A stretch of 64,000 bases of DNA from Oikopleura dioica (GCA_907165135.1 OU015568.1:6820001-6884000); one strand, 5' to 3'; shown: positions 3,287-59,677, counted from the first letter of the stretch. The notes: a model not told the origin generated them from the sequence alone. Made by a program: numbers and translations.

Positions 3287-6200
3287 TTACTGGACAAACG
3301 CAGCCAGTAGTCCTTGAAAGCCAGCATTGTAATCTAATGCGACTTCATTGGTTACATAATCGCTTCGGTCGTCGTTGAAAATGTCCGTAGGTGATCGAGG
3401 GCCGCCGACGAGAGCTCCATGGAGAGTCCAGTGGTTGGAGTCGGGGGAGTTGATGATGTCGTATCCGCAGGGCTGGGGATAAGGAGGGCATGAGCTCGAG
3501 CGATGATGAGGAGTATTCGGGAAGTTTGACCCGTGTCCAATAAGAAGAGAGCCAGGAGAGCCGTTGACAATCGGTGTTCCGCTTGGTCCTTGACCAAGGA
3601 GGTAGTTCAGCTGCCCTTCTGCCCAGGTTCTATTGAAAGAAAAATAATCGTAAAAAATATGCGTGTTGCTTACCCATATCCAGAATTGAGACCAATTGAC
3701 TCTGCGGTCTTCATCAAGAAGGCTGCATTGGCTGCGTGTCTGGCCGATCCCCACTCAGAAATATGAACCATCCCTCCAGGAGTTTTAGGCTTCGAATTGA
3801 GTGCTTGAACAAAACCGGAAAATTTCGCTTCAAAAGTTGAAGCCTGATTTGCTTGATTATCTGCTGAAAGAACTTCGTACATGACCAGATTCGCCGCTGC
3901 CGATTTGTCATCCCATGAAAATTCACTTCCGGAACCGATGCTAAAAGTCGATGCCAAGGTCAAAGCCTTGTTCAAGTCCGCTTGGAAAGAACTGGGAGTT
4001 ATGACTCGTGAAGCTTTGGCGATGAAGGCACCGGCGAGAACAATTTCATCGTTGTAGCCTGACCAAGAGTTGTAGAAATCGCGTGCAGCAGGGACTGAAT
4101 CTGAGTATTTTCCTTGATAAGTTGCTGCAAAATCAAGAAGAGATCTTGCACGGAGGAACAAATTCTCAGCGTATTGAGCATCAGTTTCGTGAAAAACGAG
4201 TGCGCCAGCTGCAAACATGGCCGCTGTTTGTGCAGCTAAATCGGATCCAGGAGCTTGCTGCGAGATTTTAGCAGAAGGGCGCTCCATTGTCATTTCTTCA
4301 GGACGTCCCCACGATGCGTGATCCACGTAACCATTGCCAACTTGTGCCCAGAGAACGTTATTTTCCATTTCGTGGCATTTTATGAAGTAGTCTAAGCCGT
4401 GTTTGACGATTCTCTTAGCGTTTTCGTACTCGCCAGCAGCAATGTAACCAGCTTTGAAAGTGTCCAGTCCCCAAGCGAGAACATGAAGAGTAAATGCCAT
4501 CGGAAAGTTGAACTTGACGTAATCTCCTGCATCGTAAAATCCACCGGTTAGATCTCTGCCTACATCACAGCCGTCCAAGAGCCCAGAATCGCCTCGCCAG
4601 CTGACGCGATGCCAAGAAGGAAGCTCGCCGGACATTTGCGCTTCGTAGAAAAAGATGTTTCTGCTCAGAGGCTCTGAGTCAGAGCGGAGGCATAATCGAG
4701 CTGACTTGTGGCCTGTGGAATTGAGGTTTGCGCTGGAGAGGATGGAACGATTCCAGATGACTTTGAGCAGTCAAGAGTTGATGGAGTGGTGGTAGTTGTT
4801 GAGCCTGGGGATAAGGTTGTGGTGCTGATAGTGGTAGTGCTGGTGGAAGTTGTTGATGTTGTTGAGGGACCATTGTCGCCCGGAACAACTGGGTCGGGGA
4901 GACAAAGCGTGATGGATTCTGGAAGAAAGACGGTCGATGAAATTGTACCGGAGAAATCAGATAGATCAACCTGACCCTCAAGAGTGATGCGAAACTCTGT
5001 TCCTGTCGTCCAATTGTGGAGAGTTTTGAAGCTCCAGGCAGTTGATTTTGATGAGAGAGTTCCCTCGGGAAGAGGAGAATTCGCGGTGTTACCCCAAGTC
5101 GTCACGCTGTGCGTCAAAAACGGAAAGGTGATTTTGAGATCGTAGAAGACGACTTCAGAGGAGATAGGAATGACCAGAACGAGTTGGAAAACATTTGAGA
5201 CTACTACGCCGTTTTCCCAGTTTTGCCATGTGCTTGGTTGAATTACCGTGTATTGAGAGGCGGTTAGAGGATAACAGGTAAGCTCTGGTGGGGTAAGAGG
5301 GGTTGTAGAAGTCGAAGTCGTTGACGTAGATGTAGATGTTGGCGTTGATGTCGTTGTTGTTCCTGTTCCAGTGTTCGTTGTGGATGTCATTGTTGTTGAA
5401 GTAACTGTCGTAGTCGTCGAAGTTGTTGTGGTGGTGGTTGTACTGGTAGTGGTAGTAGTAGTCGTATTATAAACAGACTCGTCGGTGTTGAAGCAAACTC
5501 TAGCCTTACAGTATTTTCTCGAAAAAAAAGCAAAAAGTGCACGTCTAAATCCCAAGATCTTCACCCTCCGTTTTTATTTTACGTGAAAATTTGCAAATCA
5601 CCTCGGGGCGGTCATAATCTCCGCGGAATCCAAACAAATCTCTCTGAGCATTTTTACTTTCAGATTTTCAAGAAAACGGTCCTTAACTTTTTCAGCCCAC
5701 GGAAAGCCAGTCGACAAGGCGGAAGCTGTGAGGTCAAATGAAATCGCCTTTGAAAAAATCTTATAATTATCAAAAGTATTGAAGACTTACCTTGTTCCAG
5801 CACAAGTTTTCTCTCGAATACGCAGAGTAGATTGACGCATTTTCTTCTTCAGACCATCCTTGGTATTCAAACTCGGGATTCAAGAATCGCCCATTGGGAG
5901 ATTCGACTCTTCCGGCTCCACCGATTCCGAGAAACAGCAACTCTACTCTGTAATTTTCTGAGATCGGCTGTTCCAAGGGTAGTTGGACCAGGCCGGAGTT
6001 ACAGTCGTCGCATTTTTCAAAGTTACTCACGAAAGCAGATACGCAGTTCTCTTCTGCCGGATCTTTTAACCCCTTTCTTTCGAGCTCAAGAAAGGTTTTT
6101 TATCAAAATTCTTATTAAATTTAGAAAGAAAAGCGTCTACGAGAAGCGATAAAAAACCGATCCTGACATTCCATGTTCGCGCCCTGAGTCCATTGACCGG

Positions 6201-7306: not shown

Positions 7307-7890
7307 GGTCGATTATGACTCATAATTTATGAGTGTACTTACCAGCTACAAATATCGAGCCTAGGAAAAACTTGAGCTTGACCAAAGCCATCCTTTTTTA
7401 TTTCTCTTATTCTCTTCTTTTCAAATGAAAGTTAGGTACAAGCACTCAAGTTATCATTTCCGCGCATGCGTATTTCATACCGCTCAGTGACAGCGCCACC
7501 TGAGCAGCATTGAGATTAGCAGAGAACTACTACATGTAGTCGAGTTTGCAAAATTTGATTAATTTAGAATTCCGTACGTATCCAAGTTTTATTCGGGACG
7601 CGGTTAAGTCCACCTGCCCTTGAATTTGTGGGAGCTTTGGTTTTGATTTTGGAACACAGTTATAAAAAACACATCGACAAATATAGCTTCATCATCGTTT
7701 TTCCGACGTTTCCTGAAGAATAAGACAAGTTGATGATGTTGTATCATCTGACAGCAAATTTGACTAGCCTGGCGCAACGTGGATGTTCAGAGAAAACAAG
7801 TTAGATAAGTCACATCTCTGTTTTAGACATCGCTGGCTCTATAAATTCGAGAGTTGAGAGATCAAAGAACAATTCAAAAAATCAGAGATC

Positions 7891-21179: not shown

Positions 21180-21694
21180 CAGAGTTGCAAATTTTGGTTT
21201 ATTTTTGCTGAGCTGAGCTGACCTTCGTGAAAAATTCTATGAGCTGAGCTGAGCTGAGCTGGCCTATTTTGAAGCTCAATGAGCTGAGCTGAGCTCAGCT
21301 GAGCTGCCCTTCTTCATAGGTCATTGAGCTGAGCTGAGCTGAGCAGACCTTTTTTTAGGTAGTTGAGCTGAGCTGACCCTAATTTGAGCTGAGCTGAGCT
21401 GAGTGAGCTGAACTGAGCTGTTTTTACTGTATTTTTAGTAACTAAATTGTGTTAAAATCATTGAGCTGAGCAGAGCTGAGCTGAGTGATACTTGTCTGAG
21501 CTGAGCTGAGCTGAGCAGAACTGATCATGTTCAAAAATTATTGAGCTGAGCTGAGCTGAGTGATAATTGTATGAGTTGAGCTGAGCTGAGCAGATCAGAT
21601 CATTTTAGAAAATTACTGAGCTGAGCTGAACTGAGCGACTGCTCAGCTCACTCAGCCAGCTCAGCTCACTCAGCTCAACAAATTTGCAACTCTG
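21180..21694. mobile_element. hAT-family MITE with internal GAGCT arrays (intergenic copy)
   Basis: TIR CAGAGTTGCAAA / TTTGCAACTCTG. Perfect 8-bp TSD ATTTCGGA (21172-21179 and 21695-21702). Second copy at 23345. Confidence 0.93.
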
Positions 21695-21886: not shown

Positions 21887-24141
21887 ATGCCAAAAAAGAG
21901 AGTTGTGAGAAACTTTGGTACTTATTTATTTTCGTCTGGGCTCTTCTTGATCAATTGTAAGTACAAAGAATTGTAGGTACGAACATTTAGTCTGAAATTA
22001 TCATTATCGCCTATCGATGATAATAAATGAGCGCTAGAATATGGATTTTCTTTAGTTTATAACTTTTGGCTGGAGTGCTCTGGATGAAATTTACCGAGAC
22101 AATGGCTTTTATTCATCTGGATGTGAAGTTAACGATGATGATAAACTCAGTGATACAAATCGATTTTGTCCAAGTCAAAGCGCAGCGATTGAAAATATTA
22201 TGGTTCTTGGTGGCGGTCTTTGTGAAGTTTTTATGTTTATTGGAGGAGTTTTAAGAGATCACCTTGGATTTGGACCGACTATACTGATCACCAAATCACT
22301 TCTGACAATTTCCTACGTTCTCCTCGCTAATGCTCGACCGGGAGTCTCAGATGTTCTACTGTATGGATGGGTGCTGCAATATGGCATCGCTTCTATTCTA
22401 CTTATAGTATATTTTCAACTAGGAAGACTTTTCGACAATCCCAGCATTTTTATGTCGCTGCTGATGACCATTAACACTCTGGGCACTTTTGTTCCCGAAC
22501 TATGGAAGTATTTATACATCGAATTTGGCGTCACTCCACAGAATATGGCTTCGATTTTTGCTTCAATCACAGCAATTTCCATGGTTTTTTCGGTTGTATT
22601 TATGCCTTGGTATAATGTGAAGACAAAAACATCATTCATCACTCTTCTAGGTCCGGGTTTCTTTTTATAACTACTTGGGACTTAACTTACTTTGGGAACC
22701 CTGCTGCTTTCGCTGAATTTTGAGTTTAAAGTGAAATCCGACATCAGAAATTCTGAAACAAAAGCTTCCCTTGATTGAGTATTCACAAAGAAAGATGTTA
22801 AACTCATCAGAAATCGAGGAAGACTCAACCTCTTCTTGGCAAAAATACCGAGTTTTCCTCAATCCCAACTACTTTGCGGGTATGTCCGTCTTCGCCTGTG
22901 GCAATTTCATAAATCATACTGTTCTGGCATTAATGACGGAGATCATACGTAAGTTGATTTCTGATGGCTTTTAACCAGGTTCGATTTAAGAGAAGAATGA
23001 TGAAAAAATCCTCGAAAAGGGCTCAACAGTCTCTCAGGTCAACACCCAATTCAACATCTCCAGAATTGCTTTTGGTTGCCTTCTCAAATTCTCTTTTGGA
23101 CTCTTGGTTACCTTCACCCAAAAAAAACTCTCCGGCGGCGACAAGAACTTGATTCCCTTTTTCCTTCATTTGGTGGCGTTGACGTTGTGTATTGTTGGGC
23201 TTGAAACCGCTCATACACTTGAAGGAATGTGGACTCTTTTTGTTGCCTTTGGTATGCTTCAAGCAACGCCGTATTTCTACTACTATCAAATCATAATGCT
23301 TTGCTTTCCATTCGATACTCATGGATTTGGAATAACCTCACAGGCAGAGTTGCAAATTTGGCTATATTTTCGCTGAGCTGAGCTGAGCTGAGTGAGAAAT
23401 TCTCTGAGCTGAGCTGAGCTGGCCTATTTCGGAGCTCACTGAGCTGAGCTGGCCATTTTCAGAGGTCATTGAGCTGAGCTGAGCAGACCTTTTTTAAGGT
23501 AGTTGAGCTGAGCAGACCCTAATTAGAGCTGAGCTGAGCTGAGTGAGCTGATTTGAGCCAATTTTTACTGTTTTTTAGTAGTGAAATTATGTTAAAATCA
23601 TTGAGCTGAGCTGAGCTGAGCTAAATGATACTTGTCTGAGCTGAGCTGAGCTGAGCAGAACAGATCATATTCGAGAATAATTGAGCTGAGCTGAGCTGAG
23701 CTGAGTGATTATTGTCTGAGCTGAGCAGGTAAATTCATTTTCGAAAATCAGTGAGCTGAGCTGAGCTGAGCGACTGCTCAACTCACTCAGCCAGCTCAGC
23801 TCACTCAGCTCAGCAAATTTGCAACTCTGCTCACAGGACCTTATCGGAGCCTTTTTCAATTTTCTTGGCTATCCCATAGTATTTGCTTATGAAAAAACAG
23901 CAAATTTTGATGCGTTGAAGCAAGGCGTTTGGATCTGTGGATTTATTGGTGCTCTGGTATGTATAATTTATATTTAGTTTACTCTAATAATTATTAGCCA
24001 CTCATTCTGCACTTGCCATTTGCATTTGAAATTGGGCCAAAATGGTTCCTGAAGTTGGACGAAAGAAGAAAGCAAAAGATGAATGCTGAAGCTAGTAATT
24101 TATGTCATGAAATGCAAGAAAGCAATAAAGAAATACTGTAA
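21887..24141 (+). CDS. SLC43 (LAT3/LAT4)-like MFS transporter
   Basis: FGWSALDEIYRDNGFYSSGC matches the SLC43 pattern GWGSL...EGFYSS-C. FPFDTHGFGITSQDLIGAFFNFLGYP matches FP..hFG.ltG.QSLISAVF..LQ.P. Multiple TMs. The phase of the first junction is unresolved, and the frame needs removal of the 23344-23836 insertion. Confidence 0.8.
23345..23829. mobile_element. hAT-family GAGCT MITE inserted in a coding exon; predicted GC-AG intron 23344-23836
   Basis: Same TIRs as the 21180 copy. Perfect 8-bp TSD CTCACAGG (23337-23344 and 23830-23837). Confidence 0.93.
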
Positions 24142-26145: not shown

Positions 26146-28944
26146 ATGTCCGAAGCCGGCTGCGAAGAACTGGAACACAAATTAGAAACATTCGTCGAAA
26201 CAGTTCGTCAAATCGGAATCATCGTCCACGATTTTCAACCAAATAGCCAAACAGTTTTGAACAGAAAACTCGAAGAAGTTGTCAAAGGAAAAGGGTTTTA
26301 TTGCTTTTTTATACAGTTTTTTATTGTTTGATTTCCAGTAAGAAAAGAAAGTCTACTCGTGATTTCGATAATTGACTGGAGGACCTTTTTCGTTCGCTCG
26401 TTCCAAAAACGGCTTGCTGAAGATTTCAATAAGCCGATTGACCCGTTCTCCGACAGTTTTAGTACAGTCATCTCCAGAGCAAACATTTTTCTTCATGTTC
26501 ATAAGGGTTGCGATTACGATTACCAAAATGATCAGAAAAACGACTGTCAGGACGATTTTTTGAACTGTTCCGTGAGCTAAAAAGTGTTAAACAGCGGTAA
26601 AAGAAAGTAAAAATACCTTTTCGATTGGCTCTTTTTTGAGCTTCGACGAGATCTTCAGGGTCCCAGCCGGTAAATTGGCAAATGTACTTGTTCTCGATTT
26701 CTTGATCGTCTCCTAGCCACTCGTGGTAAGTTATTTCCTTATTATCTTCGTCCTCGGTCTTTCAAAAAAGTCTCCAATCATCCCTTTTTGATAGTTTTTT
26801 CAAAAGATTGGACACCTTCCGTAAAAGTCATGAGCATTTCGACCATTTCGCTCATCGAAAATGCTTGTAGTTGATGATTTTGAATCCCTCCAGCTTAAAA
26901 TATTCCATAAAATTTGGCCCAAATTTTGTCCCCTTACAAATTTGGTACGTCTCAATCCATCTTGAAAGCTGTTGCACAAGTTCTACCTTGTGCATGGGCA
27001 CATCAGGAAGCCATCCAGCCATATCAGCTGGATTGTCCGGTGTACCAGTTCTTATCACCATTTTTCAGGGATCTCACCAGGGCTGGTAAATTAGCGCACT
27101 ATTTTCTCTCGAAGAAAAAAAAATTAGCGCACTAATTATTTTTTAGAGACATTTTCGCGTCTTTCGCGCCTTAAGTGCACTAAAATGACACTAATTTTTC
27201 CTCTTGGGGAAATTAGTGACTTTTCGAGAGCCGATCAGCACTAAAGACGCGAAAAAAGAGGCTCTTTCTCATCATCCAATAGGATGATAGTCCCGGATCT
27301 CTTCCCGGATGATAGTTTCATGGAAGACGATTTTGATCAGGGAAGAATTTCTTCAAACTGAAACTGCTAGATATATAAAAATCAATGCATCGTAAATATG
27401 ACACAATTTAATTTGAAAAATATTACTTATTTAGTAACAAATAAGTTGAAAAAAATAAAAGTCAACTTGTTATTGAAATTGTTATCAAATATTGTAGTTC
27501 GGGGTCTGAAGATCATATTTATGATAAAATATGGGTTGATGTAAACAAGAAAACGGGTCTACGGCCTCTCACCCAAAAATGGGTCGATATGCGTTCCGGG
27601 AAAAATCTATTTCATGCGTTCCGGCGTTAAGAGCTCTTCTCAGTATCTTTATTCATAGAATCATATTTATTTCATAATTTAGAAGGGAGGTCTCCTCCTA
27701 AATTCACGCTTACTTCCTTGATTTCTTAATTTAAGGGGCTTGACGGCCCTTCAATCTCAGTTCTGTCCCCAACCCCATCGTTTAAAAAATTAAATTTTCT
27801 TACAGTGAGTTGCGCAGGTAGTTGCCCACTAAAGTGCGGGTGAAGGGGCAACCAATCCTGCAATCACTTTGAGCGAGTCTAGAAAGGAACAATAGAAAAA
27901 GCGCGTATATAATAATATATAATAAATTTTATTTTGTTAATAAAGAATTATATCAACAATTCGCACAAGGCTCCTCCAGCTGCAGACTTTTGAGGACACC
28001 GAAATTAGTCGAACAATGACAAGAAGAAGATTGACAAGAAAGGGAAAAAGCAGGAATAACAAGCTGCGGATGGCCCTTCAATAAAAAAAATTAGGGAGAA
28101 GACCTCCCTAAGAAAGCTTATCTTAGGCTAAAAGTCTAAGCTTATCATTCAAATCCAGCACAAAAAGAATTGCAAACTAAAGTTGAATTGTATTTTTCCC
28201 TATATAATATAGGCTATATTTGTTACTTTATATTTATAAAGAAAATTAACAAATGAATTGACAAAGTCTTTTTTGACTTTATATTCAAATTCTCGCCCTC
28301 AATTACCCAATCCACTTTTTTGAAACCAAACTTTTTGAATTTCTAATATTTGCGAAGTTTGAAATTCTCAAACTCACGTATTCTTTAGAATTAAAGAGCC
28401 CGCGCTCATTGGCGGGCCAATCAGCAGCCCTTATTTTCGACACTTTTCGAGACACACGCGAAAGAGACGCGAAAGTCACTAAAGTCTCGACAAAATAAAT
28501 TCGCGCACTAATTTTAGTGCACTAAAAATTTTCGACAGATTTTAGGACGCGAATTTACCAGCCCTGGATCTCACAACTGAACCTCGAACATAATCAGTTT
28601 CATAAACAGTAGATATTATCTAGAAACTTTCGAAAACCCCTTCCAACAGGCCTGAAAGACATCGATCAAGCAAAGAACAAGGTCAACAGAAACGTTCCAG
28701 TCGAAGTTCTTGACTACATCGACAAGGGACAGAATCCATCTTTGTACACCAAAAAGTGCCTGGACCGAGCGCTTCAGAGCAACGAGCATATCAAGGTAAA
28801 TCATAATCGAGGACGATCTATCATCACTTCTTCAAGGGAAAACTCGAAGTTCTGGGCGAGTTCCGAACTGAATTAGCGAAGCAATTGAGCCACGTCTACC
28901 CGAAAACGCTTGAAGTCTACAAAGAGCATCGAAAAGACCTTTGA
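26146..28944 (+). CDS. MED10: Mediator of RNA polymerase II transcription subunit 10
   Basis: LEHKLETFVETVRQIGIIVHDFQP...; VPVEVLDYIDKGQNPSLYTKKCLDRAL; GKLEVLGEFR. First intron 26288-28649 is GA-AG and about 2.36 kb. Confidence 0.92.
26353..27061 (-). CDS. Putative antisense gene or pseudogene fragment nested in MED10 intron 1 (single TM near the C-terminus)
   Basis: The last two exons (...QKRANRK | AHGTVQKIVLTVVFLIILVIVIATLMN...) join via a clean GT-AG intron. The upstream exons cannot be joined cleanly, and a hAT element sits at the 5' side. Confidence 0.4.
27078..28566. mobile_element. Non-autonomous hAT element, about 1.49 kb
   Basis: Perfect 15-bp TIR CAGGGCTGGTAAATT. 8-bp TSD GATCTCAC (27070-27077 and 28567-28574). 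AT-rich interior with no transposase ORF. Confidence 0.92.
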
Positions 28945-57822: not shown

Positions 57823-59677
57823 TATTAGTTTCCCGTAAAAACGTAAAAAGCTAATTGAAAATTTCGAAAAAAACGCCTGTCCCCTCAAATGGCGGATCAA
57901 TCTTCGGACTAAATTTTACAAATTTTGTTAAATCAATTCGGTGGAGCTTCAGCGCTCAGCTCCAATATGTTTTTGTTTTGGAAATATTCTTGTCAAAGTT
58001 GGCCGACAAATTGAATCTTTAGCTTTAACGTAAATTGTATTATGTTTGAGAAGTAATACTCTGTTCAACGAAATCAGCCATTTTTGATCTAAATAATCGC
58101 CTTGAAAACTGTTTTCGAAAACAAATCCGAATTGAAGAGCGTTTACTAAAGGTTAATATTATAAGACCACCCCTCAAACTTCAGCAAAAAGTCCTCAGTC
58201 AAGTCCTTTAATGAGAATCTCCTTGAAAAAAAATCTCAATAACGACGAAAAATTTTTGGCCCCAGCTGGTGGGTTCCGCATTCGCCATCCGGTTCGCAAT
58301 TTTGGCACTAGAATTATTATCTGCCCTTACACCGCCAAGAATTTTGTACAATTTTGCGAAACAGATGATGAATTCGAGCCGTTCTTTTCTTTTAGTCGCT
58401 CAGATTTGGAATTTCCATTTCGCAAAAAATGCCAATTCTGGCGCTTTTTTTAAATAGATTTTTTATCCGTTTTTGATTAATTTAAAATTTGTCCTCAAGT
58501 CTATTTCTTTGAGACTTGAGCAAATTACTACTGTAGTATCGATTCCGCGGCGAGTTAATAAAACTCGCCGTTTTGATGAGGCCAAATTGAAAAATCTGCT
58601 TTGCAGCGTGTTCTTCATTATTTTTTACAATCGCTCAAATATTTCGACAAAATTAGTTATTTAGATACACTCTCCTCTTTAAATTACATCTTGTGCTACA
58701 TTTATTCTCAAATAGAAAGGCGTAACAGTAATAACAGTCTTACGTTAGATATATTTTATTGCGCACATAATTTATTTCATGTAAGATATCTATTTTTTAT
58801 ATTTTTTTATAACACTGTTATATTGGTACTTAGAAATATTCAGGCTGAAAATTCTCGCTTGAATGATAAAATTTATGATCAGGAAAGCGTCACGATTGTT
58901 ATTTTTTTATTTGAATCGAAAAAAAATCGAGGAATAAGGATTGGTAATGAGATTATGACAATTTGTTGATATCTTTACTATAGCTTTTAGTATTCAAATG
59001 AGAATTTTTTATTATATAACCAGTTTAATTAAAGACTAATTGTATGATAACTTAGTTAAAGAAATATTTAATTAACTTCATTAAATTAAAAACATGCTAA
59101 CTAATTAATAGTATTACTATTTGACTATTATAGTAGAATAATTTAAAATTTACAAGTTTGATTGATGAATTTATCATGTTAAAACACCTAATTAGCGGTT
59201 CAATATCAGCCAGAGAGCCATTCACTTTTACCATTGGCCCTCCCTTTGAAAAAATCTTGAGTGATTTTGGCGCCGCAGAGCTTGGTCCATTGGCGGCGCC
59301 CTAACAATCGGATACTAACTGCGCCCTGCCGATTCTGGCACTGATGTCTTCTTAACGCTAATTTCGAAGATACATCTTGTTAAAAGCTCGTTCGCTGAGC
59401 ATAACATTCACAGCGCCGCTGGTGCTTTTCTTTCGCTTCGGATACTTTTTTCGGCAGCGTAATTTTTTAAGCCAGAGACATATTTTTTTTGTCGTCGGTC
59501 AGACGCCAAGAAATTCAAATTCGAGATACGAAACGAAATGTACGACGGATACAGGCGACGGGCTCACTCGAAAGTTGAAAGCTCTTCGGAAAAAAGCTTT
59601 TTTTTTTCTTCAGAAATTCTGCTTTTTTCGGGATCAATCAAAAATCACCGCTAGAAATCAAAACAGAGAAAAGAGAG

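Follow-up and report, generated by a model that had tools for sequence, protein, structure and literature searches.

The 22 nt at positions 4664-4685 of the window, by which we mean the whole 64-kb stretch of Oikopleura dioica DNA that was analyzed, very probably represent the footprint of a hAT element that was excised from an exon of a GH9 gene. Excision from an 8-bp TSD had been proposed in an earlier note on this DNA, and the proposal agrees with our data in that the geometry of the scar is exact, its additional 14 nt are derived, young hAT elements are found in the genome, and the same form recurs only with a unit of 8 nt. The features of the window that are discussed below are listed in Table 1.

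Table 1. Features in and around the GH9 gene, and the scars and hAT elements elsewhere in the window.
Feature	Position	Strand	Remarks
Last GH9 exon	3287..3629	-	Pfam positions 352-444; NEVALDYNAG motif; stop TAA
Genuine 44-nt intron	3630..3673	-	GTAAGC...AATAG; AT-rich
GH9 catalytic exon	3674..4663	-	Homologous from SRNIFFYEAQ on; DAGD intact; frame differs from that of the upstream part
22-nt scar, very probably from excision	4664..4685	-	T[1-7] GCTCTGA + revcomp(T) CTCAGAGC + T[2-8] CTCTGAG
TGA stop	4665..4667	-	Met by the upstream frame owing to the +14 shift
Upstream open frame of the same gene	4668..5564	-	Conserved module without known family; Thr/Ser-rich linkers
Candidate 32-nt GT-AG "rescue intron"	4674..4705	-	Unsupported by length, composition, or splice-site strength
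Second scar	7312..7333	+	Identical geometry; T = ATTATGAG
hAT-type MITE	21180..21694	+	TIR CAGAGTTGCAAATTT; perfect 8-bp duplication ATTTCGGA
hAT-type MITE	23345..23829	+	Same family as 21180-21694; perfect 8-bp duplication CTCACAGG
1.5-kb hAT-like element	27078..28566	+	Third family; TIR CAGGGCTGGTAAATT; perfect 8-bp duplication GATCTCAC
Third scar	28199..28220	+	Identical geometry; T = CCTATATT; inside the hAT-like element 27078-28566

Structure and Derivation of the Scar in the GH9 Exon

Read directly from the window, the minus strand from 4685 to 4664 is GCTCTGA-C-TCAGAG-C-CTCTGAG. This is the structure described in the earlier note; both of its palindromes are perfect, and the scar is real in the assembly. 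A repeat search returned the palindromes as two perfect inverted repeats, each with 7-nt arms and a 1-nt center, that have one arm in common (4664-4670/4672-4678 and 4671-4677/4679-4685). If T is the 8-mer GCTCTGAG, all 22 nt of the scar are accounted for by T[1-7] + revcomp(T) + T[2-8], a net gain of 14 nt. The GCTCTGA and CTCTGAG that surround the insert correspond to the two copies of an 8-bp target, each of them missing only the base that would have bordered the element (2 × 8 - 2 = +14). The single C at the center of both 7-nt-arm palindromes is the complement of G8 and of G1, and an odd-centered palindrome on the complement of the bordering base is how P-nucleotides of this type have been defined (PMC5873905). 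A structure of this kind is expected by chance ~2e-4 times per 64 kb, and none appeared in 60 Markov simulations. We also considered that the middle CAGAG might be the leftover terminus of a MITE, whose TIR begins with CAGAG. This reading was rejected, as one T would be left over and two bases would not match, whereas all 22 nt follow from the hairpin model.

Comparison with GH9 orthologues, which had been called for in the earlier note, revealed that the relatives lack exactly these 14 nt. The best named relatives of the GH9 genes in the window come from O. dioica, and protein identity to other lineages of this species is 80-90%. The window sequence LDYASAL|SRNIFFYEAQ aligns with LDYANALGRSILFYEAQ in the relatives. 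The proteins of two orthologues in other lineages of O. dioica (P0001 and P0002, 82% and 80% identical over the catalytic exon) read SQLDYANALGRSILFYEAQ and are uninterrupted, and the closest paralogue (C4) reads LDYQGALEKSILFYEAQ in a single ORF. Orthologous DNA from marine metagenomes (L055 and L056) has one 14-nt gap opposite the palindrome in the alignment. With 14 nt taken out, the sequence becomes LDYASALSRNIFFYEAQ, and its length then equals that in all of the relatives. These alignments indicate that the scar is the derived state and that the relatives have a single copy of the target. A pattern search of JGI metagenomes for either the intact or the scarred allele gave no match.

Consequences for the GH9 Gene

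The earlier note stated that the additional 14 nt and the TGA at 4665 uncouple a signal peptide and CBM modules from the catalytic domain. Both the frameshift and the stop were confirmed, but the description of the upstream part was not, as a Pfam search of that region gave no CBM match and no signal peptide was located. The upstream frame (4668-5564) is in frame with the orthologues up to ...LDYASAL, and the corresponding ORF (4665-5564, minus strand) ends in the TGA at 4667-4665. The catalytic ORF (3670-4635) is in a different frame from the upstream ORF and matches Pfam PF00759, a match that extends across the whole domain in two exons (E=9.5e-86 for the catalytic ORF and 1e-25). That the lesion is derived, and is the sole visible defect in the gene, follows from the conservation of the flanks in their own frames, from the retention of both GH9 catalytic motifs, DAGD and NEV (GGFYDAGDYVKF and DYVTNEVALDYNAG), and from the comparison of the catalytic exon with L055 (dN 0.14, dS ~1.6, dN/dS ~0.09). 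The proposal in the earlier note that the excision was "recent" is plausible in a relative sense only, with the rest of the gene intact and dN/dS at this value.

With the linker region and the catalytic domain put into different frames by the scar, and with a TGA now in frame, one of the roughly 15-20 GH9 loci is most likely represented by a null allele in this assembly. For the gene this is a small matter, in that one of many GH9 copies is frameshifted and the allele is probably a null allele that segregates in a laboratory line.

During these comparisons we noted that the GH9 family is large. A search of the whole genome (64,281,565 bases in 19 contigs) gave 56 exon-level matches, representing ~15-20 loci, a large number for an animal with a cellulose house. 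Several of the loci have in-frame stops and are probably pseudogenes. On the minus strand of the window, at 4668-6030, there is also a conserved module of ~150 aa (...WGNTAN...WSFKTLHNW...) that belongs to no Pfam family, has long Thr/Ser runs on either side, and is common to the orthologues and the C4 paralogue. This module may be an undescribed carbohydrate-binding module.

Evaluation of a Candidate 32-nt Intron

The earlier note had suggested that the frameshift may be compensated by splicing of an intron from 4705 to 4674 whose AG is provided by the scar. The GT (4705-4704) and the AG (4675-4674) do exist, and hand translation showed that their removal restores the frame (...QATKPLSRN...) with a net loss of 6 residues; this was the only frame-restoring GT-AG candidate found. 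In addition, introns of O. dioica are very short (median 49 nt), its spliceosome is permissive, and 11% of its introns are non-canonical (PMC8008620). Nevertheless, we consider it very unlikely that the gene, with a real scar, is rescued in this manner to give a functional, slightly shorter enzyme, and the suggestion was not upheld.

This assessment is based on the introns of the GH9 paralogues. Paralogue exons were mapped with a home-made GH9 profile, GT-AG introns were chosen by homology, and splice joins were scored against the same profile. After removal of duplicates and two mis-calls, there were 38 homology-supported introns, ranging from 37 to 194 nt with a mode of 40-45 nt, and the candidate, at 32 nt, is shorter than all of them. 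It is also GC-rich (0.56, in comparison to 0.29 ± 0.08 for the short introns of this set). Its splice sites are weak, with a score of 4.8 bits in comparison to 11.3 ± 4.4; only 1 of the 38 real introns was weaker, and a score at least this high was reached by 10.5% of 2441 exonic GT..AG decoys. Splicing from 4705 to 4674 would delete SQLDYASA, and with it the conserved beginning (LDY..A) of the first helix in the catalytic barrel. Neither the orthologues nor the paralogue have an intron here.

An apparent precedent for a 32-nt GT-AG intron in another GH9 paralogue, in L032, was rejected, as a 68-nt GA-AG intron fits the homology better. This probable non-canonical intron is on the minus strand of L032 (G000:C1:3941501-3944500), at ~1150-1220 when oriented. 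A 22-nt intron candidate in L034 was, like that in L032, excluded as a mis-call.

Recurrence of the Scar Geometry

We scanned the window and other sampled loci of the same genome, ~207 kb of non-redundant DNA in all, for T[1..L-1] + rc(T) + T[2..L] with L = 5-12, and for an even-centered version of this form. The scan revealed 12 distinct sites with L=8, in comparison to ~0.001 predicted from base composition, and three of the sites are in the window itself (64 kb; at 4664, 7312, and 28199). No sites were observed in the ~207 kb at L = 6, 7, or 9-12. The even-centered geometry was likewise represented by 0 sites in the ~207 kb, with none in the window beyond a simple repeat. In this sample, the scar geometry is tied to a unit length of 8, and not to palindrome formation in general.

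Long-P variants were few in the same scan (one site that is one base shorter, at 58103, and three doubtful 5-nt forms, versus 12 complete forms), although only long-palindrome forms were searched and the 12 sites are no measure of the share of this product among excision outcomes. The shorter site, 58103-58123 (TGAAAAC TGTTTTC GAAAACA), has the form of the scar with one base fewer in its inverted part, and may be a variant repair product or due to chance. The sampled DNA had about one scar for every 17-21 kb, an estimate that is biased because the sampled loci were chosen for their hAT or GH9 content; the window alone has 3 per 64 kb.

The third scar in the window lies inside the 1.5-kb hAT-like element, which points to nested insertion and excision. 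Another scar (L053:442-463) is inside a non-autonomous hAT copy, and its sister copies, L054 and L052, are without exactly 14 nt and have the single 8-mer, so that L053 and its sisters are a second before/after pair. At L043:14-35 (G000:C1:5288087-5288108), a scar with target AAGATGGA is 5 nt from an inserted MITE with the TSD GGATGGAA, as if the element had moved over a very short distance. Two further scars, 29 nt apart (L011:1935-1956 and 1964-1985; G000:C3, near 1689 kb), were observed beside a degenerate hATC-domain match, and the pair suggests repeated use of one small region.

The targets inferred from the scars resemble real TSDs in composition. T is at position 2 in 6 of the 12 inferred targets versus 9 of 16 real TSDs, and A is at position 7 in 6 of 12 versus 10 of 16. 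The target of the GH9 scar, GCTCTGAG, has C at position 2 and not the preferred T.

It is unlikely that the scar arose as an inverted duplication without any transposon, through reverse copying of the 8-mer by template switching during replication or by snap-back synthesis of polymerase theta at a random break. Such processes do make short inverted duplications, and O. dioica depends on error-prone alternative end joining, which yields insertions (PMC6635534). In addition, no element-occupied allele at 4664-4685 was seen among the sequences compared. However, nothing in these processes would favor a unit of 8 nt or the loss of exactly one base at each junction, and 12 of 12 long scars show both. 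A hand check also showed that if switching had been primed by microhomology in the ancestral sequence, the product would differ by one base. Furthermore, scars adjoin hAT elements or sit inside them.

It is extremely improbable that the scar is an artefact and that the true allele is a single GCTCTGAG. This possibility was considered because the genome fits the OKI2018_I69 assembly, which was made from an animal of generation 47 of a laboratory culture, is Nanopore-based, was polished with Racon and Pilon, and had its haplotypes, which differ at 3.6% heterozygosity, merged with HaploMerger2 (PMC8008620). A perfect palindromic insertion of 14 nt, however, is no known basecalling or polishing error and matches a specific biochemical product, and an artefact would not account for a geometry that recurs only with the unit of 8. 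The same geometry was also observed in an independent Illumina metagenome contig, L060. The GH9 gene of this contig is 90% identical to the C2 paralogue, which indicates that it is from another O. dioica lineage, and its scar therefore argues against a Nanopore or Pilon artefact. The noncoding flank of the L060 scar was too diverged to align to an empty site in this genome.

hAT Elements in the O. dioica Genome

If the scars are produced by hAT excision, elements of the appropriate type would be expected in the same genome. The hATC domain, PF05699, was matched at nine genomic sites, and the scores at seven of these were identical. The element is ~6 kb long, with the TIR CAGGGTGTCAAATCG / CAGGGTGTCAAATCGCGGGGGAT, a hATC domain, and an 8-bp TSD (GTGTTAGC in L026). 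Copies of this element are 98-99.9% identical to each other, and its shorter deletion derivatives had perfect 8-bp TSDs in 5 of 5 cases. A family of MITEs with the TIR CAGAGTTGCAAATTT is represented by 317 termini genome-wide and ~150 MITEs are present; two copies of the family are in the window, and the 8-bp TSDs of this family were perfect in 7 of the 13 copies examined. Judged from these identities and duplications, and from their CAG... TIRs, hAT elements with 8-bp TSDs are present in this genome and have been recently mobile.

Additional features of the elements were noted. In the two MITEs of the window (23345-23829 and 21180-21694), the space between the TIRs is filled by (GAGCT)n-like repeats. 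Near-identical clusters ~96 kb apart, at G000:C1:634560-645435 and C1:730273-741147, each have two ~6-kb hAT copies that share termini. These clusters represent either a segmental duplication or a nested or tandem insertion, with the outer TSD ATCATTAC.

Proposed Mechanism of Excision and Repair

We propose that a hAT-superfamily element, either autonomous or more likely a MITE, entered the GH9 exon, duplicated the 8-bp target GCTCTGAG, and later excised, and thus that this very site would once have been occupied. In the first step of excision, the hAT transposase would place a nick in the non-transferred strand at a point one nucleotide inside the flank, and would close the ends of both flanks into hairpins. 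Flank hairpins are known to be formed by hAT, Transib, RAG, and MULE (PMC5499845). Because of the position of the nick, each hairpin would have at its apex the complement of the base next to the element, and the expected structures are GCTCTGA-C-TCAGAGC for the left hairpin and CTCAGAG-G-CTCTGAG, on the other strand, for the right.

All steps after hairpin formation are ones that we infer. Both hairpins would be opened at least 8 nt from the apex, leaving 3' tails of CTCAGAGC on the left flank and GCTCTGAG on the right flank. These tails would be perfectly complementary and able to anneal, since both derive from the same duplicated 8-mer. Annealing of the tails, followed by flap trimming and ligation, would then yield T[1-7] + revcomp(T) + T[2-8], precisely the 22 nt of the scar, with a gain of 2L-2, which is 14 at L = 8.

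The uniformity of the scars may be explained by the repair pathways of the host. O. dioica is without classical NHEJ and its breaks are repaired by microhomology-mediated end joining (MMEJ), as reported by Deng et al. 2018 (cited in PMC11067885 and PMC6635534). MMEJ is therefore a plausible cause of the stereotypy, and the 8 nt of perfect microhomology between the P-tails would be an obvious substrate for it. On balance, we lean slightly toward the broader view that hAT excisions in O. dioica are repaired in one stereotyped way, in which 8-nt P-tails anneal and leave a universal +14-nt scar, and that there are thousands of such scars genome-wide. If this is the case, the scars would be a natural record from which past excisions can be counted. 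A very compact genome would in addition be steadily supplied with exon frameshifts, new small hairpins, and new AG/GT dinucleotides.

An exact 22-nt scar that recurs only at an 8-nt unit provides a means to count past hAT excisions from sequence alone. The pattern may also indicate how an animal without Ku, Lig4, and the rest of NHEJ resolves breaks that are capped by hairpins, and it bears on how transposons and MMEJ together have shaped the O. dioica genome, including its rearrangements and the turnover of its introns and exons. For annotators, the implication is that +14 palindromes in exons should be treated as real lesions and not as introns.

Comparison to Known Systems

The scars described here share several properties with the footprints of Ac/Ds, Tam3, hobo, and Hermes in plants, insects, and yeast. 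In those systems, too, both copies of the 8-bp target are kept with the bordering base complemented (PMC5873905, PMC1978519, PMC5499845), P-nucleotides are centered on the complemented base, and the hairpins on the flanks are joined by host end joining. However, the footprints of those elements are heterogeneous and have mostly short P-tracts, whereas the long form in O. dioica is one +14 product. For comparison, P-tracts are ≤3 nt in Candida and reach ≥3 nt in 20-47% of events in Arabidopsis and yeast. A further difference is that the O. dioica scars are from the natural germline, while the footprints of Ac/Ds, Tam3, hobo, and Hermes are from experimental revertants.

There is also a likeness to V(D)J coding joints and to excision by Transib and ProtoRAG, in which a flank (coding) hairpin is opened away from its apex and palindromic additions result. 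The hairpins formed by RAG and Transib differ in that they are even-centered, without a complemented single base, and are associated with 5-bp TSDs, and the even-centered form was not found in the DNA that we scanned. With regard to repair, the MMEJ of O. dioica reported by Deng et al. 2018 likewise involves the annealing of short complementary tails without Ku, Lig4, or classical NHEJ. The breaks in that work were experimentally induced, and in applying the same pathway to the hairpin ends left by a transposon we infer an extension of it. hAT footprints as such are already known; what is new is a single stereotyped +14 product that is abundant in a chordate without NHEJ.
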